This document shows, piece by piece, positions 4,701-63,390 of a DNA stretch of 64,000 bases (its first letter is position 1; every line of letters begins with the position of its first letter). The notes beneath the pieces were generated by a model. It saw nothing but the letters and a program-made list of their open reading frames with translations. It was not told the origin of the DNA and did no database searches. The stretch lies in the NCBI GenBank assembly GCA_965112155.1, contig OZ218098.1, one strand, 5' to 3'. The position numbers were made by a program, and so were the translations under genes. The DNA comes from Podarcis liolepis. Lineage: Eukaryota.

Positions 4701-7700
4701 GCAGCCACCACACTGTCCAGTCATGGATGGAGCAGCTTCAAGAAGCAGGGCACAGGCAGTAAGAGTGAACCAGGCTCTTTTTTTGGAATTGAATGAAGAG
4801 GCTGGTACTGTAGGTGTAACTTTTTTTCCTATCCCAACATTGCGCCAAACAAGGTTCATTAATGGTATAGTCCCTTAATGCTAAATAAATGCCATCTGGT
4901 TTTATGCTACATGGAGGATGCCACAATAGGTCCTTTAACTATTTAATTTGATTTTCTTGCATCCAAAATTTCCCCTTTTATGGATTGCAACCTATGTTCA
5001 AAAACAGATAGCAACAGAATCCAGAGCAAATACACCAGGTGTTGTGCATGAAGTGACAGACCCGCATTTGTGAACAGAATGCTATTTCACCAGTCACGCA
5101 CCTCCCCCTCCTTCATGTGGCTTGTCAGCTGCCTTTATTTAAATTTTGAAAGCATTTTGTGAACACTTATGCCTATAACCATTCAGCCATTGCCTTATTT
5201 TTTAAAAAAGAAACTTTTAACAGTTTTCTTTTCAAAAAATAAGGCAGTAAAGTGAAAAACCACTATTGGGGATTAGAGAGGTATGTTTTGGGTGGCTTTA
5301 TGCAGTGCCAGCCAGTGTCCTGCACAATCATCTTCTGCTTTGAACTTTCAGCACATTTCTTTTTTCAGAGAAGGAAGGCATGTTTAATCTGAGTATTTAT
5401 GTAAAGATCTTTGGTCTCAGGGAAGTGTCACATTTTGCTGTAGTTCTCATTTGCTTGTTTGATCCTGCTATGCTGATAAAGAGTGAAACAATATGTTACT
5501 ATATCAAATCAAAACACCCTTACCCTGTTTGAAGTTCTCTTACCAGGCATGCTATCAGCTACCCTCCTTCTCATTTTCTGGTATCATTGTCACAGGGTCT
5601 TCTCCCATCTTAAAAGCGCCATTGCTTCTTGAGAGAGGCCTCCACTGCTGAATTCTCCTTCCTGTTCACCATAAGCTGTTCACATATCAACTGATAGGCC
5701 ACTTTGGTGGTATGTCTTCTTGACAAACTTGTGATAAAATATTCCTAAACTGTGTTTCCTCATATGTGAATTTACTTCTAATAGGGGTATACCAGCACAT
5801 GAAAAACCTTTGCAATGGCTTGGTTTCCTGGCATGTTCTGTAGTTTTCTTCCCCTCTTGTCTCCACAGGTCCCCTGGGAGTGGCCTCTACAGTAATCTCC
5901 AGCAGTATAATATTCCTTATCCAGAAGCCATATTTGAGCTTAATTACTTTTTCCACAATCCTAAGCCTTTCTTTACATTGGCCAAGGAGTTATACCCTGG
6001 CAATTACAGGCCCAACTATGCTCATTACTTTCTCCGACTTCTACTTGACAAAGGGCTCCTTCTGCGTCTGTACACACAGAACATTGATGGGCTGGAGAGA
6101 GGTACGTCTCCCCATCCCCTCAATTTGGATCTAAGAAATAAAAATCTAGGCTAATGTTAGAGATACTGCAGCAAACCTTTGGATGGCAGGGAGAGTATTC
6201 TCCACTTCCTTTGCGTTGATGGAACGTTTGGGCCGAATTGACCTTAACTCTGAGTTTTGTGTTCTAGTTGCTGGGATTCCTCCAGATAAACTAGTTGAGG
6301 CTCATGGTACATTTGCTTCTGCTACATGCACTGTCTGTCGAAGGTCATACCCTGGTGAAGACTTCAGGGTAAGTGACAGCACAGCAGATACACCACTCCA
6401 GGAATATCAAGCATACTCCAAAGGGTGCTGGTTATGTTTGGCTTAGGGACCAAGAATCTTGTTTTGCGGGGTTCACAGGTTTGCTTTTACTTTCATTAAT
6501 GCTTGGGGTGTTCAGTTAATAGTACCAACGGAAAGTGTCCCTTGTAATTTCAAGTGATGTAATGTGTGGCTTATACTGCCTGATTGTGGACTCATATCCT
6601 GCTTTCTGTGTTATCATTATAGGAGGATGTGATGGCTGACAAGATCCCCAAGTGCCCTGTGTGTACTGGAATGATCAAACCTGACATTGTTTTTTTTGGA
6701 GAGGAGCTCCCTCATCGGTTCTTCTTGCACGTGACAGATTTTCCTATGGCAGACCTGCTCTTTGTCATCGGAACCTCCCTTGAGGTCTGCGCTATCATGA
6801 ACATGGAAAGAGAATGAAAGCTGGGGTATTGAGACAGAGTGGTTCGGGGACTCTGGAAAGCAATGCGGATCCAAAGGGAAAGCGAGGGTGGCAATTCAGG
6901 GATCAACAAAGTCGAGTGCATCTTGGGAAATGTGTAAGAAGGATTTATAAATAGCTCGGGAAGCATAGATTGCCAAAATCGAAGAAATGATTTTGTGTAT
7001 CTAGTGATGTAGGGAGAGGCAGAATCAGAGTTGTTGTCTCTCAGTGGCAGAGCAGAAGTAAATGTGCCTTAAGCACAGACATATGACAAGACAGTCTTCA
7101 CTAAATATTGTTGTGTATAAAGTCAGGAATATTGGAAATGCAAGCAGTTTTTCCTCTTTGACATTATCCCAGCACACACAATAGAAATCTTAACATGCAC
7201 ATTGCCTCCATCAGCAACTGTGTTAGCAGGGGAAAGGGAGAGCAATATGGACTCAAATCACCTGTACTGTAGGGATCAATGATGAATCAGTACACCCCAT
7301 TTCCTAAATAAGAAGCATGTAGATTTCCTTAGCTGCTGTTCAAATGTTCTGCATTAATTGAGGGTGAATAGCTGGTACAGTGTATGGCCAAGGGCAGGGG
7401 TCAGCAAACTTTTTCAGCAGGGGGCCGGTCCACTGTCCCTCAGACCTTGTAGGGGGCTGGACTGTGATTTTTTTTTGGGGGGGGGATGAACAAATTCCTA
7501 TGCCTCACAAATAACCCAGAGATGCATTTTAAATAAAAGCGCACATTCTACTCATGTAAAAACATGCTGATTCCCTGACCGCCTGTGGGCCGGATTTAGA
7601 AGGCAATTGTGCCGAATCTGGCCCCCGGGTCTTAGTTTGCCTACCCATGGCCAAGGGTATGCACCCTGAAATAGGAAGGCTTTGGTTCAAATATTAGATT

Positions 7701-19000: not shown

Positions 19001-22000
19001 ATAAATAGAAATACTTAACTAACTGACCAATTGCATCGAAGATATATCTGTTCTCCCCGCCCCCCAAAAAATAAATCCTGGCTCCACCCATGGAGTAGAT
19101 ATACCTTATAACTCATCCCTTTTCTCAGATGAAACTTTATGATTTAAGAAATTCAGGGTACCCACCAAAACCTGTAACACTCTGTAGTTCCCCCCTTCCT
19201 CTCTAAGAAATATTACAGTGTATTTCATTGGCTGCATGAAAAGAATCTGAAGTAAATGTGGGTGTGAGGCAATGAGGAACTTTTCACCCACCCTGTCAAG
19301 ACGTCGGTCAAGGAAATCCAGCAGAACATTCACAGCATCCATGTTGACTCCCATATATTCAAGCGAGCCCGGATGCACCTTGGGGGCCAGCAGGACATCC
19401 AGACACTTGAGAGGCAGATTGCCCAGAAGGTTGACTGTGTGGCTGAACATGCAATGCAAGACAAAATATGCAAAGGAGGTAGCCTCCACATCAACAAGGA
19501 GCCATTTTGTTTTGTTGTTTAAAACCTGACAAAGATCTAGCTAATTTCCATTTTCAAGCACCACGGGAACAAGACCCAAAACTATCCTTTCCTTGGCACC
19601 GTGGCAAGACTATAAACACTCCTGAGAACATTTAACAATAGCATTTACTTCTCCCATGTACTGCCTCAATTTTCTCTTCCCTTCCTTTGATGTTTTCTGA
19701 TGTCCATTTTTAGATTATATCAAACTAATTCTTTATAAAGTGCCATGTACTATATCATCATCATCAACAACAACCAGTAGCCAGTGGCGAAGCAACATGT
19801 GGCAGCCCCCGGAGCGGAGAACAGCCGTGGGCGTGGCTGGTGCACGTCCCAGGGGCGTGGCACGTCGCTTGCGGGGGCATGGTGCACATCCCAGGGTTGC
19901 GTGTCCCGGGAGGCAGTCACGATGGCACCCATTCCCCAAACAGCACCTGGTGCGGCACGCCCCCCCCCCATATGGAAGTGCAGGTAGCACTATATCAATC
20001 AGTATCAGCAACTAAAGTTCTTAGGTACTAACTGTGTCAAATAGACCTGACCCCCAGATTCTTGAATACTCAAGCTGTATGGCGGTCATGATAATGTTTT
20101 TTGTTTTCCCAGCCAATCCAAGTTTTTCACCAGGATAATCACCTGTGAAATTCTTCTGTCCGATCTTCACCATCTGCTGAAATCATCAGGCAGTGACGGA
20201 GGAGGGCACCCAAGCGTCGGTACAGAGCAGCATCTTCCTGGCCCCAAAACACAATGAAAAGCCTGATTATGAGAAAGGAACACGTCTCTCTTGTGCACAG
20301 TCTGTTGGCAGCAAAAAGCTACGCTTTACAGTACGTTCTCAAAATGGAATGTAATTCTAGTCCAAAGAAAAACTGTGCCCAAGCAAACTAAAAATGTGTG
20401 TAGCTGAATTACCCTGCTCAGAATACAGCCCTTAACAGAGTTCCTGGCACCATTTTGTGGAGAAATGTGGGCATAGTAACCAAAGTAGGGCTGAATGAAG
20501 TAGTACAAGACTCCTTCATTCAGCATTTCTTTCTTCTCTTGACCCCTTAGCCTTCTCTCTGGGTGTCTTGATTATGCTCCCACAATTTTGTCTAAGCTGC
20601 ATTCTTCCTTCTCTTTCCCCACAATGTAAAATTATGCAAAACAACAATTAAATTAGGCAGCAAGAATATAACGGTTAAATTAAATTAATTCATACATACA
20701 CAAACACGGCAAATTGCAATTTTTTAAAAAAAATATCCAGTCATGGAATTTGGATTGTCTGGTTGCTGAATCTGGAATATTTTCTTAATGCAGAACTCCA
20801 GATGCAAATATTGTTTCCCTACAGAGGTACAGTGGTGCCCCGCAAGACGAAATTAATTCGTTCCGTAATTTTTGCCGTCTAGCGAATTTTTCGTCTTGCG
20901 AAGCACGGTTTAAACGGTTTAACAAAGTCGCAAGACGTTTTCGTCTTGCGAAGCAAGCCCATAGGGGAATTCGTCTTGCGAGGCAAATCGCGAACGAAAA
21001 AACCTTTCGTCTAGCGAGTTTTTTGTCTTGCGAGGCATTCGTCTTGCGGGGCACCACTGTATCTATATTTCTTCTGCCACACTTTACCCTCTCTTCTGCT
21101 GCTTCATGTTTCATTTATTTATATTTTTAAAGGTTTATAAACTCACATCATAAAATATCAGAGCAGAATACATAAAACCCAAAGTAATTTTGTTGAGGAT
21201 TTCTACAATCGAGCAGTATAATTTTGTTGAAATAAATAAATAGTATAAAATAGACACCCAGAAATTATATCCTTCACAGGTCTCCCTGAGCTCACAGTTC
21301 ATTACTAATCCAGAAAGTGAGAGAGACTCTGGATATTTTAAATAGCTTGATCTGCTAGGTTTTCATCCCGATTTAGTTAGTAAACAGACACTGGCAGTAC
21401 CTTGCCAACACTGCTGCTTACACCTCAACACCCACAGTGCTAGGCTTTCTTTCTTGAGTTGCCATGCATTGCTGAAAAATAGATTCCACCAGATTGTAAT
21501 ATATCTGATTTTACCATGTTTTAGAACAGGTCTGTGGAAGCAAACATAACATAATTTTAGAAATGAATGTTTTCATTCATTTAGCCTTTCTTTTTTATTG
21601 GCTTCGAGTGTGCAGGAATTTGTGCTTTTGTATGTTGATAAATAGGCCTGTTTATAACAAGAGTCAGCCAGTGGGCATGAGCAGAATTGACCAAATATGT
21701 AGTAGGCGCTCCCACAGAACAAGTCAGAAATGCAGGGGGGTGGGGTGAACTAAGTCAGGCAACTTGCCCCCTTCCTTTCTTAAATGGTGTCTATAAGCAC
21801 AGGAATCATGGATGAAAGAAACAGATACATAAAAACAGAAATACATCACAAAATTGAGCTACCAAAAGCTCTGAGTGTCTTACCTCATCTACCTCCCTCT
21901 TGCTGGTGTCAAATGTGATATTGAAGAGCACTTTCAGGATCTCCATGGCACGCTCCACCTCCTGCCGAGGTAAAGGAGCAGAAGGGTTCCCTTCAGCAGC

Positions 22001-23208
22001 TACCTCGTGAGGGTCTAGCCACTTGACTCCCAGGGTCAGTTCCAAGGTATCTGTCATCAGACCGATACCCCGGAGTTCCTGCGCAAGCTGCTGTCGGATG
22101 TCCACCCTCAATGCCGTCAGCAAGAAGAGAAGGCGCAAGTCAAAGAACTTTATATCGTGCGGGAGGTTTCTCTCGTTGTAGAGTTTGATGCGGTCTGTGA
22201 GGCCCACCACGAACCGGGCTTCGGAGGTCAGCTCCTGAGCCCGGGGACTGCTGAAGACAATGTTGCAGAGACATTTCAGCGCCTCCAGGATCACTTCAAG
22301 GTCTGGAACCTCCAGAATCTGCTCTTCTGCGTAATCAATCCCCGCGTGCCTGGCCAGCGTCTTCAGGCCTTCCATGGTTGTGAAAGGGCCAAGGCAGCTT
22401 TTGTCTCGGGACAGGATCCGTATGCTTTCCAAACAGGTGACCTGGCAGGATGGCTGCAGCACCCTCTCCAGAAACTTGATCAGAAGCGCAGCCAGTTTCT
22501 GAAGCATTACAGAGGTGGGGGGTGGGAGAAGAAAACGAATAGTGAAGCAATAAACGTCTATGTGAAGAAAGAAAATTATGTCTGCGCTAGTGGATTGCAC
22601 AGGTTCAACGAGCTACGTTGTACCTCAAACCTGCACAACCCATCCAGTGCCTCGGGCCATATCCATCTTGGTCAGTCACTGCCAGTTTGGACCCCATTAG
22701 TACATCTGTGACACATGTTAATATACTGTACCACTTAGTATTTGACTGTAGAACAGTTTATAATTTTTAAATATAGTTAAAATAAATGAGGCTTTTTTTG
22801 CCTAAATGTGCACTGCTCTACACTTGCTTATATTGGGCAGGTTAAAAATTTAATAATAAAAACAGCAGCAGCAGCAGCAACTGCATTTGCAATTTTAATG
22901 ACAAGTTCCCTGCAATTTGCAGATATGCCTTTGGGACTCCTCTCAAAACCTCTGGCGTTGGTGGCAACATTCTAACTCAAGGTTATTAATGAGCAAGTTT
23001 AAAAAAGCAGGTTTAAAAATGATCCTTAAGAGGATTCCACTTTCTATACACACACCCTCATTGGTTTTAGTGATATGTAGTTCTTTGCTTTCTGCAGGCC
23101 ACAATAAAGCAGCAAAATGATGCAAAAGTGAGTGGAGTAGTGCCATGGTGGACCTTCAGTGAAAACAGATACAGTATTTAAAAATAGGCACATTTCTGGT
23201 TTCATAGG

Positions 23209-35300: not shown

Positions 35301-37256
35301 TGATCCTCCCCAGGTCACAGTTGCCACCTTCCCCCCTGCTCCGGGCTCCTGTGTCTTCTGTAGTTGACTAACAGGCAAGGACGTGGCAGCTGTTTTGCCC
35401 ATGCTTTGCCAGTGTGGCTTTCTGTTGTGGTGGAGGAATGGACTCTTCCCCGCTCGCAGGGCATTTGTGTGTGTGTCTGCAGTGTGGGGTAACATCCCAC
35501 ACTAGCAAGTGGGGAGCCTGCTGTGCCCTGTGATGGTGAAAATAGGCTTTGGAGTGAGCTGGGGGAAGGTCTTCAAAATAACCACACATTTTACCATATT
35601 TTGTTGTTGTTGTTTAGTCGTTTAGTCGTGTCCGACTCTTCGTGACCCCATGAACCAGAGCACGCCAGGCCCTCCTGTCTTCCACTGCCTCCCGCAGTAT
35701 TACCTTTTGTTTTAACAGCTGTTATGTTTTAGCTGCACTAAGTGGCATAATTATTTTATCTTCATTTCAGGTCAGAATGCCAATGCTGTGGATGATATGT
35801 TAGATGTGGAAAATAAGCGTATGACCGAAAACCTAGCCTCCAAAGTCACCCGGCTAAAATCGGTTTGTAGATTACTTACTTTACTTGGGGCTCATCCACA
35901 CTTACCTTTTGCCCTGTGTTTTCTAGGCACAGGGCTGTGCTTTGAAATGTCATCACTGAACATGTTTTATTTCTCTTGCCCTGGCGCTTTTCCATCGAAA
36001 ACTTGCTCTTTCACGCTGAATCAGAACAAATAGAAATTTGTGGCATTTGGGCAAAAAGGAAGTCTGGATGAGCCCTTGCTCTTTGATTGCTGTCTTGCTC
36101 TCCAGAAGACTTTGGTCTTTGAGGGTTTTTGTTTTTGTCCCCACCCCCCTTGTATTTAGTAATATACAGAGAATTTCTCAGGAGCAAATGATATTCTTGT
36201 TTGCAGTTTTATTAGTTCTTTCCGAAAGTTGTCTAGGTATCAATAACTGCTTCATTCTGTGTTTTCAATAGCTTGCACTGGACATTGACAAAGATGCTGA
36301 GGATCAAAATCACTACTTGGATGGCATGGTAAGCAACTGTTTGCACTCTTTAAGAATTACTGATGAAGCTCAGCATGAGCAAACAGGACAATTAGTTTGC
36401 AGTGAAACATATTTCTGTACAGAGAAGAAATCACCCACAAGTCTATTGGTGTAAGTTGCTCTGTTCCAGAGAGTTAATGTGTTTTAGCCTGCCTTTATAC
36501 TTCTGGGACATGCTCATGCACACGTATCTTTTTTTCCTTTCCAAGAGGGACCAAACTTGTTGGTCTTCTGTTGGTAGTGATTCCCTGAGAAACTGGTGTT
36601 CAGTGATCTGGTATCTAATGGCAAATATGCTGTGAAACTATTTTATGCAGTAAAATTGAGGTTCGTGTCAAATATTCTGAATTTCTTATGCAAGAAGTAC
36701 CTGAATGAACAAGTGTGCAAACCTTGTGTGGACCTTGCACAGACTACCACATGTTATAATGATCACATAGAAGTCTTATTTTCTCACTGGATTATCGCAA
36801 GGATAAATGAGATCAAAATATGCACGCAGTAAAGTCATTTAAAATTGTTATTGACAAGGTCAAATCTTGAATTTCACTAGTGTATTTTGCTGGTGTGGGA
36901 TCTGAGCACATGTGTCTGCATTTGTTTGGGTTTTCTTTTTAAATATTAACAGTGTTAAATTGGAATTCAATTAACTGAGTTAAATATATTTCTCTCACTG
37001 AAATATGCCATATGTATATATAATCATGTTGCTTCTTTCAGTAAGCAATGTCTTCTAAATACCTTATTATTTCTACTCTTGGTGTTAGGATTCCGATTTC
37101 ATGAGTGTGACAGGCCTTCTGACGGGGAGTGTGAAGCGTTTCTCCACTATGACCCGGTCGGGAAGAGACAATCGTAAACTTCTTTGCTACGTCTCTGCTG
37201 GACTGATTGTAGTCTTCTTCATCCTCTATTATTTGGTTACAAGAGCACGGACTTGA
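35105..37256 (+). CDS. BET1L: BET1-like Golgi SNARE (GS15), 111 aa
   Basis: Exons 35105-35123, 35771-35862, 36272-36328, 37089-37256 (336 nt). MADWGRGQNANAVDDMLDVENKRMTENLASKVTRLKSLALDIDKDAEDQNHYLDGMDSDF...TM domain LIVVFFILYYLV. Confidence 0.97.
35601..35698 (-). mobile_element. BovB (RTE) LINE 3' terminal fragment
   Basis: On -: GGCGTGCTCTGGTTCATGGGGTCACGAAGAGTCGGACACGACTAAACGACTAAAC(AAC)n, the characteristic BovB 3' end. Confidence 0.8.
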
Positions 37257-40984: not shown

Positions 40985-47349
<6,365 letters not shown>

Positions 47350-51653: not shown

Positions 51654-54600
51654 TCAGCACATCTTCAGTACATCAGCCTGAAATTAAAAGGGCAGAAGAA
51701 AATTTAGCATAAAGTCCTCTCAACATAGCAATATGGGATAAGTTCACATCTTCGCAGATTACCCTCACTATAGTTGTGTTAGTCTTTTTAATATTTTTTA
51801 TTATTTTTTATTTTTACAATTCGAAATAGATATTTTTATAAACTTATTGATATCCAATGACTTCCCCTCTTTTCTTTCCATGGTTCATTTTACATATCTT
51901 CCATTCCTGCATATTTTACTATAACCATTCAAATCAATTTTCCATTTTTACACCATTCAAACATTAATTACACTGTTGAATTTATCTTAACGCTGCCAGC
52001 GTTTTTGGGTTTTGGGACCAAAGCTCACAATTTTAAAAAGAACTATTACAAAACCAGGATAAACTTTTGTCGAGAATGTATAACCTTCTATTACAATGGG
52101 AAACAAAAGACGAACTAGTGAAAGCTTCAATGACCCACAGGGCAATGGATATAGGACACAATATGGATTTAAACCTCTGGGATAAACTCTGGAAAAGAAA
52201 TTTGAAATTTACTGCATGTTACACATTGAAAGAGAACTATCTGAAAATGATTCACAGATGGTACCCAGCTCCAAGTAGGTTGGCTAAGATGTATAATGTA
52301 CAATCAGATATGTGTTGGAAATGTAAAGAAAAGGAGGGGACCAGTTTTCATATGTGGTTGACATGTAAAATGGTAAAAGAATATTGGGAATTTTTAAAAA
52401 AAATTACCTTCCCCCAAAGACCAGAGTCCTTTTTATTAGGAATAGCCCAGACAGAAATTCCTAGGTGTCAGAAAATCTTGTTTATGTATGCAACAAGAGC
52501 AGCCCATGTTTTGTTAGCCAAAAAATGGGAAATGAGCGAGGTCCCAGATAAAGAGGATTGGCAACTTAAGATGTTAGAATATGCAGAACTTGCAGGTTTA
52601 ACACATAGAACAAGAGAGCAAGAAGAACATATGTTTAAAGAAGAGTGGAGAACATTGACTGAGTATACGGAAAATAATTGTACACCACTGTTTGTGGTAG
52701 TTTTGACCTAGTGCTATTGGAGCACCATGCCTTGTGTCCAGTGGCGGAGCTTCATGCTCCGGCACTGGGGGGCAGAGAGCAGGCGGGGGCGGGGCTGGCC
52801 ACCTGCGAGGGCGTGGTGCCCAGCGCTGGCGGGGGGGGGGGGCAGCTGCGATGGCCGGGGCGGTGCGCTCTCCCCTCCACTCCTCTTCCTCCACTAGTGC
52901 TTATGTCTACATGACGGATGCTGGGATGGCCCCACACCTGTTCACATGTTCCTTTACAAAAACTTGCTGATATTATATCTAACACAAGTGTGATTCCTAG
53001 GCTGGCCAGATACAAAAGAGGACAGGCCTCCTGGCTCTTTAATAGTTGTGTAGATGAGGGGATTTCAGCTTGCTTGACAAGCCACCCCCGCTGGAGTACA
53101 TACGCTCTTGGACCTCTGGCTGCCCATGTTAAATCTAATATCAGTGAGCATCTGGGAGCCTAAGCTACCTTGGTGAGTGGTGCCACCTCATAAGCACCAC
53201 TTTGTCTACCGAGACTGCCTCCACACAGCAATTTATTTCCTTTTCACATTTCCTTGACTGTTGATTTCTGCGTTATAAATGAGCTTTCACAGAACGTAAA
53301 AGCCACTTCTGGGAACGTAGCAGAATATAACACAAGTTGAGTGCTCATTTCTGTGTTCATAGAAGAATAGAATTGCAGAGTTGGAAAGGATCCTGAGGGT
53401 GTTTCTAGCCCAACCCCCTGCAATGCAGGTATTTTTACCTGACGTGGGGCTTGGCCCTGAAATTAAGAGTCTCATGCTCTAGTGACGGAGCGATCCTGTG
53501 TATTTACGTCCAGATAAAATCTATTTGCAAATACTGCAGAAATGAGCACTAAACTTGCACTGTGCAACTTGCAGGTGCAACTACAAACCAAAACGTAAGA
53601 GAGGACTGAGAGAGGTTGAAGTTGTGGCAAACACAACTTCCAGTTTTCCTACCAGTTTTCCTGTTTTGAGCCTGGCACCAGCTCCTGCCACCGCCTAGGA
53701 TGGCACTGCAGACCACATGGGGTAGGTTGCACCCAGTCCAGTGGTCCAGGGTTTCGCCATTCTCTAGTAGATAGAAAACTTGTTCTAATTTTTAAACATT
53801 ACTCAAGTCCCTGGAAACCTGTGTGATTCTACGTTCTTTCATGTTCAGTATGTGGACATTAGCATGATTTTTCTTAATTGAATAGCATTTGTGAAAATGT
53901 TACGACGACCCGTCAGAGTTAACTGCAAGAAAAGCAAGGACATTTTTTTAAAATAGAAAAAGAAGATTACCGCCAGATCCACCAAAGCCAGTTTGTGGAG
54001 CAAAGACAACTCGAATACACTTGCTCTCATTTTAAGTACACCATTTATCGCATGGACGTCACTTGTGTACTTTGAAAGTTCTTCCTGAAACACCGAATCC
54101 GATTTAAAAAGCCCTTTCTGCACAATGTTATTGACAGCAATACAAGAAATCAAACCTAGGTTAAAAGAAAAAGAAGAGCTGAAGAGCAAGTGATTTGAAA
54201 ATTACATTTTTTACACATATTTTATTTCATGCCTTAGGAGTGTAAAATTAATAACAGCGATGCAGTGGCTTAACAATTAATCCTTCTTCCCAAGGGACCT
54301 CTGCAAATTGTAGCTCTGTGCGGGATAGTGGGGTCTCCTAACGACTCTCAGCACCTTTAATAAACTACAGCTCCCAGAATTCTTTGGGGAAAGCTGTGAC
54401 TGTTTAAAGTGGTATCATAATGCTTGTATGGTGTGAATGTTGAGCCAGTCGCTTTCTCACACACTCTATCTCATAGGGTTGTCGAGAGGATAAAATGGTG
54501 GTTTTTTCTCAAGTTTTAAGGAAGGAAGGGACTGGCTCTTCTTAAGGTTCTGTTCATTTTCACTGCCAATCTCTGGTTTTGATCACACTTTTACCTCCAT

Positions 54601-54690
54601 CTTAAAGAGACATAAACAGTATTGGCGATACTTACCAGAGTTGCAGCCACATGGCAAGGAGAGGAGCAGAAAGACAATGGCTGCCTTCAT
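51654..54690 (-). CDS. Secretoglobin family protein A (87 aa; occupies the SCGB1C1-syntenic position and orientation)
   Basis: Exons on -: 54690-54636 (55 nt, signal peptide MKAAIVFLLLSLPCGCNS, phase 1), 54155-53971 (185 nt), 51677-51654 (ADVLKMC*). Canonical 3-exon secretoglobin structure, TATATA at ~54783-54777, ATTAAA on - at 51449-51444. Confidence 0.85.
51785..52686 (-). mobile_element. L1-clade LINE insertion with 5' inversion (in intron 2 of secretoglobin A)
   Basis: The + strand at 52010-52686 encodes the L1 ORF2 C-terminus (HRWY, CWKC...H..LTC zinc knuckle). The - strand at 52005-51785 carries ..KTLAALR*, the 3' UTR and an A-rich tail. Confidence 0.78.
52739..52899. mobile_element. 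hAT-type GC-rich MITE
   Basis: CAGTGGCGGAGC...CCTCCACTAGTG; TSD CTTGTGTC/CTTATGTC. Confidence 0.75.
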
Positions 54691-55417
54691 AGCTACAAGG
54701 ACAAAGGAGCGCTCCCTGGGAATAGTCAAAATGCTCTGTGACTTTCTTCGGAACCTCAGACATGCAGCCGAGAGAAATATATAGGAGCCAGCCAGCAACA
54801 CTGACTCCTCCCTCAATATGGCATGGCAGTTTACAAGACTTCTTTGGCTGTTTTTGTTTCTAAACAGCATGCAGTCAGAGGGAGAGATTTACTGGACTTT
54901 AAAAGACTGAAACCCATTGCTAACATGCAACGTATCATTTTGTTGCTTTGTAACAATTATTGTCTATAGCTAAATGTTTAGAAACCAGGTTCTGCAAGTA
55001 AAGCTTTTTTTTAAAAAAACTTATTTACTGTGGTGAAGAGGATTTATTTCTACACAAGAGTCAGATCCGAGACTTTCTGCTGACGCTATGAAACAGGATC
55101 TTGGCCATCGGCTGATTAATGCAACACTATACTTTCCCTTCTAGCTATACTTTATATTTCACATGCAGCTAATTGTGGAAAAATAGTGCCTCAGCACTAG
55201 TAAAAGGCTCTCGTGTTGAAGCAGCCGATATTATCAATTTTGTACTGCTCAGGTATGAAGCCTCTGAATTATTCCACTGCAGTACCTCAGGATAAAAATA
55301 AAAATAGATGCATTTTAAATAACAACAACAACAATTTAAGACAATGCATTCAGCAGCTGGGCAGGATGACCCTCTGTTGTATGATATGATCCCGCAATGG
55401 TTCTTATATACTTAGAT

Positions 55418-55781
55418 CAGGGGTCGGCAAGGCTTACCGGGCATGGGCCGGATCACTCCCATGGAGATCCTCCGTGGGCTGGACCGGCACAGCATGACGC
55501 CGGAAATTGCATCTGCACACGTCCATGGCACCAGAAATAGCTTCTGCGCATGCCCAGATGCCTAAAATCGTGCCTTCACAGAAGCGATTTCCAGCGTCTG
55601 GGCATGTGCAGATGCGATTTCTGGCGCCGCAGAAGAGAGTCCCTGCGCCGTGCTGCGCCAGTTTAGTGCAGCGTGTGGGGACTCGCCAAGTGGACGGCTC
55701 GGTTCGGGGGCGGCTCAGGGGCTGGTTAAACAGCCTCCATGGGCTGCTTCCGGCCCATGGGCTGCAGGTTGGGGACCCCTG
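55418..55781. mobile_element. hAT-type non-autonomous element
   Basis: CAGGGGTCGGCAA...TTGGGGACCCCTG TIRs; degenerate 8-bp TSD ACTTAGAT/ATTTAGCT. Confidence 0.78.
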
Positions 55782-56080
55782 ATTTAGCTGGTGTTCAAGT
55801 CCCTGCTCAGTCCAAAAGGCTGACTGGCTATCCTTGAATCAGTTGCTGCAGCTCAGACAAACCTACCTTCCAGGGCCGTTGTGAGGGTCAACGGGGAGGA
55901 GAACCAAATATGTCACTTTGAGCTGCATGGAAGGAATTAATAAAAACAAACACTTTTGTTGTGTTCTCTGGAAGCAGAGGCCAAGCAACACATGTGCGAG
56001 CATGTGCAAAATGATGTCATGACATCATGTTGAGCACACCACTGGGCACCCACAAACTGGGGCCCAAGTTGGCGCCTCTG

Positions 56081-56407
56081 CCTCAGAGATATTGTGGGTT
56101 CAGTTCCAGACCACCACAACAAAGTGAATGTTGTAATAAAGATAGTCACGCTTTTTTTTGTTTCCCAGTGCATCCAAAAGTCATGTTTACACTAGTGGTA
56201 CCTCTGATTAAGAATTTAATTCATTCCGGAGGTCTGTTCTTAACCTGAAACTGTTCTTAACCTGAGGTACCACTTTAGCTAATGGGGCCTCTTGCTGCTG
56301 CTGCACGATTTCTGTTCTCATCCTGAAGTAAAGTTTGTAACCCTAGGTACTATTTCTGGGTTAGCGGAGTCTGTAACCTGAAGCGTATGTAACCCGAGGT
56401 ACCATTG
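56081..56407. mobile_element. Tigger1-like terminal fragment (56081-56192) abutting a mariner-type MITE (56193-56407)
   Basis: Similar to 49321-49413 and to the MITE family at 27287. Confidence 0.7.
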
Positions 56408-58077
56408 TACTATTAATCCAGGCCCTTGAGGCCGCAGAGGTGGGAGGGGGAAAAACAGCTCCAGCACCAACCCACTCCTCTACTGTGGCCAGAAAAGGGG
56501 CGGTGGTGATGCGGGGGGGGGGGGAATTTCCTTACTATGGACGTGGCTGGGCTGCCTGCAGTTGCACCCCCATCCTCATAAGGAGGAATAACTGTGACGT
56601 GCAATACAACGAGGCATGCCTGTACTTTGGCAACTACTTAATAGCCTGAGAAAAATTCATTTAAAGATGTTCAGAATAGATAAACTGAACTATGCATCTA
56701 TGAAAATACCAGAAAACCTTTAAATGTATAGATACTGCATTGCAAAACGAGACAAGCAGGCTAGCAGATGACATTTTTTGTTTTTAAGGGTCTTGTCCCT
56801 CCACACTCATATTGCAACATTGGAGAAAGAGAAGAGCAAAGTGTTTTTCTGGTTCTGCTTAGATGGTGCTGGGGAGAGTGAAAACACAGCTATGTACCCC
56901 CCAAGATGAAGAAAGGCAGGCAGGCTATGCAAAGAGAGAGTTGTTTTCTCAGGACTATCCAGTGAATAAATGGCCACGTAGGCATAGCCAAAGAAGAGAA
57001 AATGCACCAGAAGGTCAAAATAAGACACACAAAATTTGCACATGGTCATTTATATGTATAGATATATATTTAGAAATAAATGCAAATATTTAATGGGAAA
57101 TATAATGCACTCCACCCTAGGGGTTAGACACTAACGAGGTGTTTGGTGTGCTTGCTGTACAAGTGCTGTGTGCTCGCAGTGTGCTCTAGTGCTTAAAGTG
57201 TTGGACTACGACCTGGGGGAGCTGGGTCAATAAACCCCACCGAGCTATAAAGATCACTGTGTGATCTTGGGCCAGTCACTGTTTCTCAGCTTAACCTACC
57301 TCACAGGGTTGTTGTGAGAATAAATGCAGATGGGGAGAAACATGTGTGCTGTCTTGAGTTCCTTGGAGGAAAAAGGGGCTTTCCCAGCTGGATAAATGGC
57401 TCCTTACCACGAGTGTCCACTATGTTAAGGTTTTAGTTTTGTTTTAAATGTATTTTCTTTTGTGCTTTTAACTGGGGTTTTTAATGTGTAAATTGCCTTG
57501 AGATGGTGGTCTAGAAGGTGATTCATAAATCTATTGTAACAGCAGCAGCAACAACAACAACAACATAAAATAAATAGATAAATAACTGTTGACAGGTGCT
57601 TCAAAACCCCTGCTTTCTCTTCTATGGCCTCCGTGGGTTTTATCTTTAAACTGGGAAACCCTTCAAACAGCAGACTGTCCTCTGGCAGTCTTTCAAATAG
57701 AAACATGGCAGTGCTACCAGAGAGCTCCATATGTGAGCAGGGATTTTCCACATTCAGATTAAACACTTCATAACACCATTTTTGCCCTCTTGCATTTTAA
57801 AACCCCATTTATATTCTGCACCTGAGTCCACAGGGAGATGCACTTGCCTTGGGCTGGGCGGGGGGAGGGAAATCTTTCCTTATTTTGCAAGGAAATGCCT
57901 TACAGTGCATGCCACGGTGACCTACACATTGTCTATTAATTTTACAATGTTTGAAGCAGCCCCGTCTCCTTCAGATTTCATTCCCCCCCTCCCTCAAGAG
58001 ACATCAGACCGCCCATCTTTTCTCTCCCTCAGGAAATAAGGAGAATAACAAGGTGAATAAGGTCATGTTTCCTCATT

Positions 58078-58160
58078 TGTCATTTTGTGGGCGGAGCCAG
58101 TCTTGCTACCAGGTATGTGTGTGTGTGTGTATATATATATACACACATACATACATACCC
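58078..58160 (+). promoter_or_regulatory. Secretoglobin B proximal promoter: GC box plus a TATA region expanded into (GT)n(AT)n(ACAT)n
   Basis: 58078-58107 matches the secretoglobin A promoter (54823-54794, -) at 24/30 nt. The TA tract lies about 90 nt upstream of the ATG, as in gene A. Confidence 0.6.
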
Positions 58161-58231
58161 GAGCTGTGCAGTCCAGGATCCCAAACAACCTGCTGCTTAT
58201 TGTAACCCTATTCAGAGCGTTCTTTGCCACC

Positions 58232-60320
58232 ATGAAGCCAGCGCTTGTCCTTCTGCTCATCACCCTGGCATTTTGCTGTTCCTCTGGTAAGCATTACTAA
58301 TGGCCTTCATTTCCTCAACAAACCGAAGGAGCAAAAATAGAACAATTCAGTGTAGTGTCTTCAGAAGCAACATTTGTAAACAAAGTGCCAGAGAGCCTCA
58401 GTGAAATGAACTCCAAAACCAGGACCCTTCAGGCATCGGGCTCTCCAGGCAAACAGTACCACCTGCCCAAAGGTAGGTATACAGGTGGCCAAATGCAAAG
58501 AGCTGTATTCAGCTGAGTTCTACACAGACCCATTGAAATTCAGGAACCTAAATTCATCCTATCCATTAACCTCAATGGTTCTACTTTGAGTAGAGCTAGC
58601 GCTGAAAACCACCGGATATGTGGAAAGGGGTCAGTTATGGATACCGCTAGGAGCAAGTTTATGAGCCTGGATGGTTAGAGCGTGGGACAGCCGCATATTC
58701 CTGCATTGCAGGGGGCTGGACTAGATGATCCTCAGGGTCCCTTCCAATTCTCTGATTCTCTGAAATTACTGGCTCTGACTGTGTTGATGCGAATTAGCAA
58801 GGCTTGCTTGTGCATCTGGGAGAACAGCTGGGTTCAGAGGAGCTGTGACAGTGGAAGGAGTGTGAAGAAAAGAAGTGTGTGGGTTCAGGGAGAAGAAAGA
58901 ATAGTTTTCAAAAAGGCTGGCCGTTGTGTTCTAGCACTATGACCCACCTACTTACTTCAGGAAAATGGGGTGGTCCTCTCAGTGCCCAGAACAAGGAGAC
59001 AAGGAGTTCACCTGGACTAACTCTTGAGAGGGCCCTGCACTCAAGCACAACCCAGCCCAAGTTCTCTCAGGAGCAGATCCCATTGTGCTTCATGAGGCTT
59101 ACTCCCTACTAATTGTGTTTACTAATTGTGTTTAGTTGCTTTTGTGCTACTGCCTGGCAGCTCACAGGACGGAGCTCAGAAAGATCTGTGAATGTGACAG
59201 TCAGTGAGTTACATGAGGCACCGCCAGTTTATGTTGGCTCTAGTAGTGACATCTCCATTCTGTGGTGAGCTCCAGTGTTGTACTCAATGGGATCCAGTTT
59301 AGAAGTTACTCAGCTCACAGGAAAGCTGGGCCAAAGTGTTTTTTGTGTTTTCTGGGGGGAGGCAGTGCTATGTAGAGGAAGCTTAATGTTTGACTGGTCC
59401 TTCCTGAATACACCACTTCCAGTGAGTGTGCCACCCTTTCATCATGGCTTCATGTCCCTGGCATGCAAACATAGCAATGAGCGAGTAAGCATTACACTCT
59501 TCCCTCATGTAGTGTCAGCAGAAGGAGTGTTTCTCCCACCACAACTCTACAGAGTTATAATTGGTATCCACATCATATCAGAGGTAGTGCATTCTCAGGT
59601 GAGCCACCACAAAGGGTTTAAATAAAGCATGCATTTTAAAAAAAAATCTGTTTGGTTTTTTTTCTTTTCTTCCTAGCTTCTTTTTATCAGTGTGCAGTTG
59701 TTCAAGATATTATGTCTCTAATGCTTCATGGATCAGAGTCCGATGTGAAGAGTGCTCTTGAAAAATACTCTGCTTCAAAGCTTGCAATATCTGCTGTTAC
59801 CACGTTGAAACAGAGCGTCGACAAATTGTCACAGGAGGAAAAAAATGGCTACAAGACACTGGTGGTAATTCTGTCACTTTTTTTCTTGCTTGTTTTTTCC
59901 CCAGTTGAAGATTACAAACAGGTTCAAAATTTTCAAACTTTATGTACAGTCTGTTTGTAAAAAACATTATGGTAGAGATCAAAAGTCAAACAGCCCTCTC
60001 TGTATACAAATTCTTATGCATAATCTCTCAATTTACACAGTATGCCTATAAAATTATGAGGAAAACCCAGGTCTGCCCACACTAAAGCTGGCCAACTGTT
60101 CCAATAGTTCAGGGAGGTGTCCCAAGTCACAAAGAGAAGGCAAAGATATTAATCATTTCCACTTATCTGCCATGATGCAATCTCATACATTTGGGGAAGC
60201 TTATTAATACTTTTGTTCATCAAAAAGTACTCTGTGCTTTTGTCTCCTGCTTCTTTTACACTTCAGCACCCTGTACTGACCTACATTTCATTTCAGGAAA
60301 AAGTGCTGGAAAAATGCTAA
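58232..60320 (+). CDS. Secretoglobin family protein B (88 aa, uteroglobin-like cysteine pattern)
   Basis: Kozak GCCACCATG. Exons 58232-58286 (55 nt, signal peptide MKPALVLLLITLAFCCSS), 59677-59864 (188 nt), 60297-60320 (EKVLEKC*). The exon sizes and phases are typical of secretoglobins, and the LKQSVDKL motif is present. Confidence 0.88.
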
Positions 60321-60483: not shown

Positions 60484-61078
60484 ATTATGCTACTGAAAAC
60501 CTTGAGAATTTTTATGCCATGTTCTTGAATCTTTCATGCTTCAAATCACTGCCTTGCATTCCTGTGCTCAGGGTTCATTTCTAAATTTGTATGATGAATG
60601 CATTTTGTCACAGCCAGTGCCAGATTTACGTATAAGCTAAAGAAGCTATAGCTTAGGGCCCCACTCTCTAGGGCCCCCCAAAACTATATACTTCTTCTTA
60701 ATTGTATTTCACTATTAATATACTTCTTCTTAATTGTATTTCAGTTTAATAATTACTTTGATAAAATACATATTTTGTTATGTGCAAATGGCTTTAGGTA
60801 CCTATGAGGTCCATAAATTACCATATAGCATATATTCAACACACACAAAAACAGCGACAATTTGTTGTTGACAAAGGACAGCTGGACATATAAAGGGCCC
60901 CATTACCTTCAGTAGCTTAGGGCCTCATCAAACCTTATATCAAACCCTGATTATGCTACAGAAAACCTTGAGAATTCTTATGCCATGTTCTTGAATCTTT
61001 CATGCTCGAATCACTGCCTTGTAATCCTGTGCTCAGGATTCATTTCTAAGTTTGTATGATGAATGCATTTTGTCACAG
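60484..61078. mobile_element. hAT-like element (60615-60949) flanked by ~130-bp direct repeats (60484-60613, 60950-61078)
   Basis: Both flanks read ATTATGCTAC.GAAAACCTTGAGAATT...GAATGCATTTTGTCACAG with few mismatches. Element termini CAGTGCCAGATTTA...TATATCAAACCCTG. Confidence 0.8.
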
Positions 61079-62300
61079 AGGCTACTTTTGGGGATCTGGA
61101 GAACAAATCTAGAAGGGCAACATTCCCTCCATCCCTTAATAGTAAGTGACGATGGGTTCACATTGATATACTAAAGGACACAAGCCCAGCTCCAGAGTAT
61201 TGGGTGCCCAGAACAGGCTGCCCTTGATAGATCCCACAGCAGCAATTGCTTCCTCAGTTCCCACTAGCATTCGGTGCTGTCAACAGCCAACAGCCTTTGC
61301 CTCCCCCTTGCATGCAAGCAGACACATGCACAGTGACAGTGTTGCTGTTATGTGCTGGGCAGCCATGTAGCTCTCCCAGCCTCTGGAGGCAGCACAGCTC
61401 AAGTCAGGTAAACCCACTCTGGTGCTTTATGTATTTGCATGACAAAGACATGTGATGCAGCCCTGCTTGGAGCTGGGCAGGAAAGTAGGGACTTTAATGT
61501 ATTGTGCTTCCTCTGTGTAGCACTGGTCAAACAAAGGTTCTTCTTACAACGGTCTCCACAAGGTTTGGGTGATATCTACTCTAAGTGCAATAAGTTGCCA
61601 CAGGATCCAGATGGTCACTGTGGAGCAAATAATAACTCCTCAAGTAACATTGACCATCTTCAATGATTCTTAGAGCTCCATCTCGTGGCTTGCCAGTGAG
61701 ATGCACAAAAGAAAATACAGTAAGGGAATTAGGGAATAAGCCCCAAGGAACACAACAGAACCCACAGCTGAGCAAATCTCCATCAGATTGTGCTGCCCTT
61801 GAGTGCAGCCACACACACATACTCTTATGGCAGGCATGTACAAAGTCCGTTTCGGGGGCCTAATCTGGCTGGCCTGCCAGTCAGTTTAATGCTGTGGCAG
61901 TTTATTTCCCAGGGTAAAAAAAAGCTCAACACCACTGCCTTATGGGGTATCCAAGAGCACTATTTCAGACACGTGGCTCATATACCGGTACTTAGGTATG
62001 TTTTTACATTGTACATTTATGAATGTATTATTTTTATATATGAGACCTTAGAATTCCTATAACACCTTGTTCTCGGCAATGGGAGAACCATCAAATTCTC
62101 TTGAAGAAAGGTGGCTGGTCATCACAACGCCAAAATATTAATGCTAGAAATGAAGGAAGTTTTCCTTCATGTGACATTTTGCAGCTTAAAGAGAAGATGT
62201 TGCATTCAGCCACACAGGTGCATGTCTCAATGAGGTGATACTATGCACATGGAGAGCCAGATGTCTGAAATGTCCTCATTTTGGAACCTGTTTTACTGTA

Positions 62301-62541
62301 CAGTGGTACCTCGGGTTACATATGCTTCAGGTTACATACGCTTCAGGTTACAGCCTCCGCTAACCCAGAAATAGTGCTTCAGGTTAAGAACTTTGATCAG
62401 GATGAGAACAGAAATTGTGCTCTGGCGGCGCGGCAGCAGCAGGAGGCCCCATTAGCTAAAGTGGTGCTTCAGGTTAAGAACAGTTTCAGGTTAAGAAGGG
62501 ACCTCCGGAACGAATTAAGTACTTAACCCGAGGTACCACTG
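62301..62541. mobile_element. Tc1/mariner(pogo)-type MITE
   Basis: CAGTGGTACCTCGGGTTA...TAACCCGAGGTACCACTG, TA flanks. Confidence 0.88.
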
Positions 62542-63390
62542 TATTTCATTTACAAATGCTGTCTCTGAAAGCATGCACTGAATTGTTTTATTTTTGCTTT
62601 TTCAGTGACTTGCTGCAAAGAGCCATAAGTGATTCTTATCAAAGAAGTAGCAGCATGCTAGGGTGATGAACAGAAGGACAATGTCAGTTTCTGGGCAGGG
62701 GGGAGACACTTTAGAAGGTGTAAAACTGGGCATGTAATTTATTTAATTGCATAGTTCAGAAACAGGAAATAGCAACAGATGTTCTACCCATCACATGAAA
62801 ACGGAGGGCACTATAAACTTATTCACATCTGTTATCTTCCTTATTTCTTGAGGTGGGGGGAAGATGGATGGGAGGGGAATCCTTCAATTGGTGGAAGAAA
62901 AAGACGAATAAATAAAGGCAATAAAAGGAAGGAAAGAAAAAGAATATATAAACAGCACTAACAAAAAAACATCATCAGTTCACAGTATGGATACAATAAC
63001 CATCAGCACATCTTATTTTGATTTTTTCCTACACTGTTCTTTTTCCTTCCCCTTTTTGTGAAATCTACAGGTAAAAATCATTTAAATAATAATAATAATA
63101 AGTAAACCTTCCATTGGTTTGGAAAAGCAAATCTAGCAGAGACAGAGGGCTGTTTTAAACATTGCAAAATTTGTGGGCAACATGCTGAGTTTAGATATGG
63201 ACTTCACCAGCAGGTTGGGGGGGGAATCACTCTCTATTTGTATAGCTTACTTCACAAGGTTATTGAGAAGCTGAGATGTACCAGTTTTATGCAAATCAAT
63301 GTTCTCTTTTGTCCTCATTTTTGGTAATGCATTTCCTCTAAGCAGTGATTTAATAAGGGCTGGATGTCAAGTCCAGGTTCCTGCATCCCT

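Follow-up and report, generated by a model that had tools for sequence, protein, structure and literature searches.

Do two divergent secretoglobin genes in a lizard encode the two chains of one heterodimer, as the paired genes behind mouse ABP and cat Fel d 1 do, or two proteins that each dimerize on their own? The question is raised by positions 51,654 to 60,320 of a 64,000-nucleotide stretch of Podarcis liolepis DNA (GenBank assembly GCA_965112155.1, contig OZ218098.1; hereafter the window), where an original prediction made from the letters alone recognized two such genes, here called A and B, and proposed them as a candidate ABP/Fel d 1-like module. Secretoglobins are secreted in abundance, but what they basically do is still unclear. 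The Abpa and Abpbg genes are adjacent and arranged 5'-5', head to head (PMC2291036), and the chains of ABP and Fel d 1 carry three cysteines each and are joined by three interchain disulfides (PMC5957422). We find that A and B are secretoglobin genes with a uteroglobin-type cysteine pair. We consider it highly probable that they are intact, belong to a cluster at the site of mammalian SCGB1C1 and encode secreted, disulfide-linked dimers, leaving aside which chain pairs with which.

Both genes have three exons and are read away from each other. On the minus strand, exon 1 of gene A (54636-54690, 55 nt) holds the ATG and the signal peptide MKAAIVFLLLSLPCGCNS and ends at a phase-1 donor, GTAAGT; exon 2 (53971-54155, 185 nt) encodes the bulk of the mature chain, with the proximal cysteine and a serine at uteroglobin position 44; exon 3 (51654-51677, 24 nt including the stop) follows the acceptor TTTAATTTCAG and encodes ADVLKMC, the distal cysteine being the final residue. 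Gene B mirrors this plan on the plus strand, with exon 1 at 58232-58286 (55 nt; ATG and signal peptide MKPALVLLLITLAFCCSS, then the phase-1 donor GTAAGC), exon 2 at 59677-59864 (188 nt; mature chain with the proximal cysteine and a serine at position 44) and exon 3 at 60297-60320 (24 nt including the stop), which encodes EKVLEKC and likewise ends on the distal cysteine. All four introns are GT-AG, with donors GTAAGT, GTAATC, GTAAGC and GTAATT; a pyrimidine tract stands ahead of every acceptor, and in both genes intron 1 is in phase 1 and intron 2 in phase 0. The two ATGs, at 54690 (minus) and 58232 (plus), diverge with 3.5 kb between them. Reading the exons, splice sites and phases in this way confirms the predicted layout of two intact divergent genes with exons of 55, 185-188 and 24 nt.

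The same three-exon models underlie records from congeners. Gene B corresponds to P0003 and P0001, "uteroglobin-like isoform X2" of 88 amino acids in Podarcis muralis and P. raffonei, and gene A to P0005, a "hypothetical predicted protein" of 87 amino acids in P. lilfordi; these are 97-98% identical to the exon 2 translations of the window.

Family membership holds on three counts: a PF01099 match, the uteroglobin fold and the terminal cysteine pair. The Pfam Uteroglobin profile (PF01099, a hidden Markov model with a gathering score of 24.8 bits) matches gene B exon 2 at 40.2 bits (E 4.6e-10) and gene A exon 2 alone at 24.1 bits, slightly below that cutoff. With full-length orthologues, the whole profile gives 69.3 bits for P0003 (B) and 39.8 bits for P0005 (A), both above the gathering score. 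Among PDB entries, gene B exon 2 matches rat CC10/uteroglobin chains, and an A-type profile matches uteroglobin only, leaving Fel d 1 chain 2 unmatched; a phmmer search of PDB with gene A exon 2 returned chance uL4m matches only. The AlphaFold2 model of P0005, with a mean predicted local distance difference test score (pLDDT) of 78, consists of a signal helix followed by four helices. It matches rabbit uteroglobin 1UTG with Z 8.7 and a root-mean-square deviation of 1.7 Å over 67/70 residues, the runners-up in the fold comparison being uteroglobin fusions and Fel d 1 (Z 5.9 for Fel d 1). The gene B chain reaches a pLDDT of 89-90 within the complex model described below. A recent survey by Karn & Laukaitis 2025 (PMC11884772) recognizes secretoglobins by three exons, phases 1 and 0, the uteroglobin fold, proximal and distal half-cysteines that bond in antiparallel and conserved cavity residues, and gives 55-nt first exons as the rarer form. 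A and B show the corresponding exon count, phases, exon sizes, profile match, fold (for A, in the orthologue model) and terminal half-cysteine.

Each gene contributes two cysteines, one in the exon 2 translation and one as the last residue of the exon 3 translation. The central position, 44, is serine in both chains, encoded by AGT in A and AGC in B, each one base away from a cysteine codon; it is cysteine in the Sceloporus A-like P0012 and in Podarcis P0007 and P0009. At the cavity positions 6/13/21/28/41/63, compared with human uteroglobin, A has V/G/F/Y/M/V and B has V/M/V/Y/L/V, five of the six being acceptable in each chain; cavity position 42, aligned to human uteroglobin, is R in A and K in B. 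Each gene product comprises a signal peptide of ~18-19 residues and a four-helix monomer of the uteroglobin fold of ~69 residues, with one cysteine near the N-terminus and one as the last residue. Once secreted, the monomers would assemble into antiparallel dimers locked by two end-to-end disulfides, and the hydrophobic cavity of the dimer may carry a small lipophilic ligand, as that of uteroglobin does.

How old is the pair? From first to last cysteine, A and B align without gaps at 21/65 identities, 18/58 in exon 2 and 3/7 in exon 3, which reproduces the predicted count exactly; shuffled sequences averaged 5.2 identities (standard deviation 2.1), and 21 was reached in 0/20,000. A BLASTP comparison of the A and B exon 2 translations returned no alignment, and the homology of the two is visible only through the ungapped count, the shared profile and tblastn cross-matches (E 0.005-0.024). 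At the nucleotide level, exon 1 is identical at 42/55 positions and exon 2 at 84/174; better conservation of exon 1 than of exon 2 is the usual pattern of fast-evolving secreted proteins. A maximum-likelihood tree of 26 sequences, comprising lizard paralogues and mammalian SCGB1A and SCGB1D, groups P. lilfordi A with Sceloporus P0012, "prostatic steroid-binding protein C2-like", at 98/93. P0012 aligns without gaps to the gene A orthologue at 40% identity over 87 amino acids, and the A type is intact in Sceloporus. The A/B split is therefore older than the divergence of lacertids and iguanians, and the claim that the duplication is old and that both copies have stayed open is borne out.

The same tree separates all lizard sequences from SCGB1A and SCGB1D at 90/92. 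The mammalian SCGB1A clade, at 99/96, excludes every lizard sequence, which places A and B outside uteroglobin proper (SCGB1A1). Because the tree includes no SCGB1B, 1C, 2A, 2B or 3A references, it can neither assign subfamilies nor prove an independent origin. In the ESM Atlas, the nearest clusters for both orthologues are tied among 1C, mammaglobin-B-like, ABPA and 1D, the SCGB1C1 cluster scoring 0.93.

At lower coordinates in the window stand a SIR2-family (SIRT3-like) exon at 5810-6154 (plus strand), a Ric8 (RIC8A) exon at 21806-22600 (minus) and a BET1L-like exon near 35809 (plus). An ODF3 (CIMAP1A)-like gene follows at 42600-47300 (minus); it is the next gene on the downstream side of A and is read in the same direction, with its first coding exon near 47265 and PGP..Y repeats at 42615-42720. 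The human order and strands at 11p15.5 are SCGB1C1(+), ODF3(+), BET1L(-), RIC8A(+), SIRT3(-). The window order SIRT3, RIC8A, BET1L, ODF3, A is the mirror image of it, and gene A therefore sits at the SCGB1C1 site, on the strand of ODF3. A single interval of 11p15.5 is documented to hold human SCGB1C1, ODF3, BET1L, RIC8A and SIRT3 (PMC9027593). The GC-rich start of the window (~100-1100) resembles a CpG-island promoter.

The pair does not stand alone on its chromosome. Other Podarcis secretoglobins with neighbouring accession numbers are found there: P0007 and P0014 ("uteroglobin-like", 95 amino acids), the paralogue P0009 ("major allergen I polypeptide chain 1-like", 93 amino acids) and the paralogue P0013 (98 amino acids). 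The secretoglobin accessions run CAI5763088-92 in P. lilfordi and XP_053252420, 434, 447 and 458 in P. raffonei. A and B therefore belong to a cluster that reaches past the window and comprises at least five paralogue types; within the window, a hidden Markov model built from the gathered secretoglobins and run over the six-frame translation found no further secretoglobin exon 2. Our interpretation is that A and B are anciently diverged paralogues that arose by inverted duplication within this lizard cluster, that the cluster occupies the conserved SIRT3-RIC8A-BET1L-ODF3 block, and that gene A holds the mammalian SCGB1C1 site on the same strand.

A third copy has decayed next to gene B. At 62065-62867 on the minus strand, collinear blastn blocks and alignment reveal an inverted copy of the B promoter, exon 1 and intron 1, in four blocks of 74-77% identity to gene B. 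Its ATG is gone and its donor GT has become AT, and searches of the six-frame translation with the secretoglobin model found no exon 2 for it, nor any between it and B. This is what remains of a third secretoglobin gene, in convergent orientation to B. A counterpart of an alternative first exon of B persists in the relic at 62233-62285. In B that exon lies in intron 1 at 58406-58471 (plus strand), is intact and reads MNSKTRTLQASGSPGKQYHLPK, followed by GT; the RefSeq models of P. raffonei and P. muralis begin isoform X1 (P0002/P0043) with it, and because the alternative exon lacks a signal peptide, that isoform would not be secreted. The same interspersed repeat, with the look of a tRNA-like short interspersed element (GGTACCTCGGGTTACA), occurs at 56200-56400 (plus) between A and B and at 62300-62530 (minus) in the relic intron. 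Just past the gene B stop, a 130-bp direct repeat, 94% identical, occupies 60484-60613 and 60950-61078 (plus), its copies ~470 bp apart.

Smaller features surround gene A as well. An in-frame ATG upstream of its start opens a 95-residue open reading frame at 54583-54870 (minus strand) that runs into the gene A start, and the P. lilfordi record CAI5763091.1 (147 amino acids, P0017) uses it. This longer model is probably an annotation artefact, because the upstream ATG lies upstream of the TATA-like box. In gene A intron 2, an open reading frame of 214 residues at 52067-52711 (plus) has a weak zf-RVT match (E 0.007, below cutoff) and is probably the C-terminal remnant of ORF2 of a retrotransposon without long terminal repeats. 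The gene A stop is followed after 210 nt by an ATTAAA, and neither AATAAA nor ATTAAA occurs within 1.3 kb of the gene B stop.

The divergent intergenic region (54691-58231, 3.5 kb) consists mostly of interspersed repeats. Both ATGs are preceded, at a distance of ~93-102 nt, by a TATA-like box of their own, and a MAFFT alignment places a similar short box, GGGnGGAGyCAGTsTTGCT, immediately upstream of each TATA. The similarity of the two promoters falls below BLAST significance and is suggestive only. At 58107-58160 (plus), the TATA-like box of gene B coincides with a microsatellite, (GT)n(TA)n(CA)n, whose length variation could make the promoter stronger or weaker from one individual or species to another. 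The steroid-response element RGNACANNNTGTNCY occurs nowhere in the window.

As to where the genes are expressed, mammalian SCGB1C1 is a protein of the olfactory mucosa, and nasal glands are therefore a reasonable first place to look for A and B. Judged from the SCGB1C1-like position of gene A, nasal or olfactory glands or airway glands may be at least as likely a site as the femoral glands that the original prediction also named. Secretoglobin, uteroglobin, allergen and mammaglobin terms are absent from the supplementary tables of a Lacerta agilis femoral gland proteome, which speaks only weakly against the femoral glands, and a literature search returned no paper joining the femoral gland with secretoglobin-type terms.

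Comparison with known secretoglobin systems sharpens the dimer question. The genes of mouse ABP (Abpa/Abpbg, SCGB1B/SCGB2B) and cat Fel d 1 are like A and B in being adjacent, divergent and built of three exons. Their products form an antiparallel disulfide-linked dimer, an arrangement that for A and B is a prediction. Each chain of ABP and Fel d 1 carries three cysteines, however, whereas A and B have two and a serine at the central position. Chain 2 of ABP and Fel d 1 is longer and belongs to Pfam Feld-I_B, whereas A and B are of equal length and match PF01099 only; no Feld-I_B (PF09252) match to either was found, even at E up to 10. In our limited tree, A and B fall among other lizard paralogues. 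The predicted ABP/Fel d 1-like module is thus upheld in its head-to-head layout, and the three-cysteine signature and Feld-I_B relationship are not found.

Uteroglobin/CC10 (SCGB1A1) resembles A and B in its two cysteines, its mature chain of ~70 residues and its structure 1UTG, the nearest fold match, and gene B carries the NCBI name 'uteroglobin-like'. SCGB1A1 differs in forming its own mammalian clade (99/96) without lizard genes, in its locus at 11q12, and in being a single gene whose product is a homodimer. Chains of the mammaglobin/lipophilin family (SCGB2A/SCGB1D) have three cysteines; A and B would parallel the pairing of 2A with 1D if, as naming hints suggest, A were SCGB2A-like and B SCGB1D/ABPA-like. 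With SCGB1C1 (RYD5), gene A shares position and strand relative to ODF3-BET1L-RIC8A-SIRT3. Mammals, however, have one SCGB1C1 gene where Podarcis has a cluster, and the published SCGB1C logos lack the proximal and distal half-cysteines that A and B both have (PMC11884772).

One reading, to which we give somewhat less than an even chance, is that A and B form an ABP/Fel d 1-like module, co-expressed from the shared 3.5-kb region and producing an obligate disulfide-linked A:B dimer that carries a pheromone or lipid. The layout is that of the Abpa-Abpbg pairs (PMC2291036), similar short boxes stand upstream of both TATA boxes, and both copies have been kept intact since before the lacertid-iguanian split. 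Serine at position 44 in both chains gives a matched two-cysteine pair, set among relatives (P0012, P0007, P0009) that have cysteine there. An ESMFold2 complex of mature P0005 and mature P0003 reaches an interaction prediction score from aligned errors (ipSAE) of 0.79 in 3/3 runs, the best control reaching 0.30; by calibration, the mark for this score is reached by 51/78 solved complexes and by 2/108 mismatched pairs. At least 97% of the contacts recur between runs, partner pLDDT is at least 88, and in the predicted interface, which is antiparallel, helix 1 of either partner lies on helix 4 of the other.

Several observations count against this reading or against the wider interpretation. A and B lack the three-cysteine signature that ABP and Fel d 1 share (PMC5957422), and the two-cysteine pattern is known from homodimeric uteroglobin. 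There is no Feld-I_B match and both chains have 69 residues, hence no long chain of the chain-2 type; other two-cysteine paralogues, such as the P0013 type, are equally possible partners. The pass of the A:B complex cannot tell which family member binds, nor a heterodimer from a homodimer, and it may be due to memory of the solved uteroglobin and Fel d 1 dimers. In the cavity, Gly at position 13 in A and Val at position 21 in B are doubtful. The full-length tests ran on the orthologues P0003 (B) and P0005 (A), which are 2-3 residues off the window genes. Gene A was found annotated in P. lilfordi only; RefSeq has no entry for it in either P. muralis or P. raffonei, and low expression or an overlooked short exon could explain the gap. 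Among the indexed sequencing runs that contain the stretch, none is recorded as RNA. The ABP/Fel d 1 analogy drawn in the original prediction thus survives in part: the complex prediction passes its controls (0.79 vs 0.30), but the cysteine pattern is that of homodimeric uteroglobin.

About as possible, and likewise short of an even chance, is that A and B encode two independent uteroglobin-like homodimers under separate regulation, their divergent orientation being only the trace of an inverted duplication in a cluster given to such events. Cysteines stand only at position 3 and at the last residue, as in uteroglobin; each gene has a TATA-like promoter of its own, 3.5 kb from the other, and the region between is mostly interspersed repeats. 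Because the cluster shows another inverted duplication, that of the 5' part of B at 62.07-62.87 kb, orientation can flip without function, and the orientation of A and B may be a by-product. Against two homodimers stand the confident A:B prediction, compatible though it is with them, and the serine at position 44 in both chains, whose match would then be a coincidence; taken by itself, the matched loss of the central cysteine fits partners and fits two homodimers equally. We give the heterodimer a chance a little under even and the homodimers about the same.

It is very improbable that either gene, or both, has fallen silent or is in decay and only looks intact in the assembly: the absence of RNA-recorded runs among the indexed runs containing the stretch, the gap for gene A in two RefSeq annotations, the adjacent decayed copy and the missing canonical AATAAA/ATTAAA within 1.3 kb of the B stop would fit it, but frames, splice sites, signal peptides and cysteines are kept in at least 3-4 Podarcis species with 2-3 amino-acid changes, an intact A-type orthologue exists in Sceloporus, and real decay nearby looks different, with ATG and donor lost and no exon 2.

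Genes A and B are known or nearly so and are already partly catalogued. Karn & Laukaitis 2025 (PMC11884772) treat secretoglobins of Podarcis muralis, P. raffonei, P. lilfordi, Hemicordylus and Eublepharis. They distinguish an "SCGB2A squamate" group and, with uncertain affinity, a "wall lizard" clade, and they report that SCGB1C was not found in lizards. A and B come from the same genus and the same superfamily as that lizard set and display the features by which its members were validated there (PMC11884772). Gene A is probably the single P. lilfordi 'SCGB2A' of Karn & Laukaitis, because A is annotated only in that species and P0012 is named 'prostatic steroid-binding protein C2-like'; gene B or its neighbours are probably members of the 'wall lizard' clade as it is described there (PMC11884772). 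Since lizard secretoglobins were surveyed in 2025 (PMC11884772), the existence of the genes is not new; the main text of the survey says nothing on how the lizard genes are oriented, on their synteny or on whether they cluster. The novelty that the original prediction hoped for is accordingly reduced by the published Podarcis secretoglobins and by the existing annotation of both genes, and it stands for the layout and synteny, which the main text of the survey does not mention (PMC11884772). Beyond that survey, the window contributes the divergent pair, its placement at SCGB1C1/ODF3, the two-cysteine state of both genes and the decayed third copy; at least three further Podarcis paralogues likewise go unmentioned there.

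A broader scenario can be drawn from these elements, although we regard it as unlikely. Squamates would have kept SCGB1C, and the ODF3-adjacent site would be the ancestral amniote secretoglobin locus, expanded in lizards to at least five paralogue types that keep the terminal cysteines. A and B would then form a co-regulated two-disulfide heterodimer, independent of the ABP/Fel d 1 and mammaglobin/lipophilin pairs, with the central cysteine lost in parallel.

In the only survey of secretoglobins outside mammals, lizard genes appear as isolated sequences of uncertain affinity, and SCGB1C is reported as lost from squamates. A lizard cluster at the SCGB1C1/ODF3 site supplies a positional anchor for amniote orthology, and it lets synteny, phylogeny and simple biochemistry test the origin of paired, heterodimer-forming secretoglobins. 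If A and B do not form a heterodimer, they would represent an ordinary inverted duplication in a known family. If they do pair as a two-disulfide heterodimer, they would represent an independent origin of the paired-gene architecture that underlies mouse ABP and the cat allergen.

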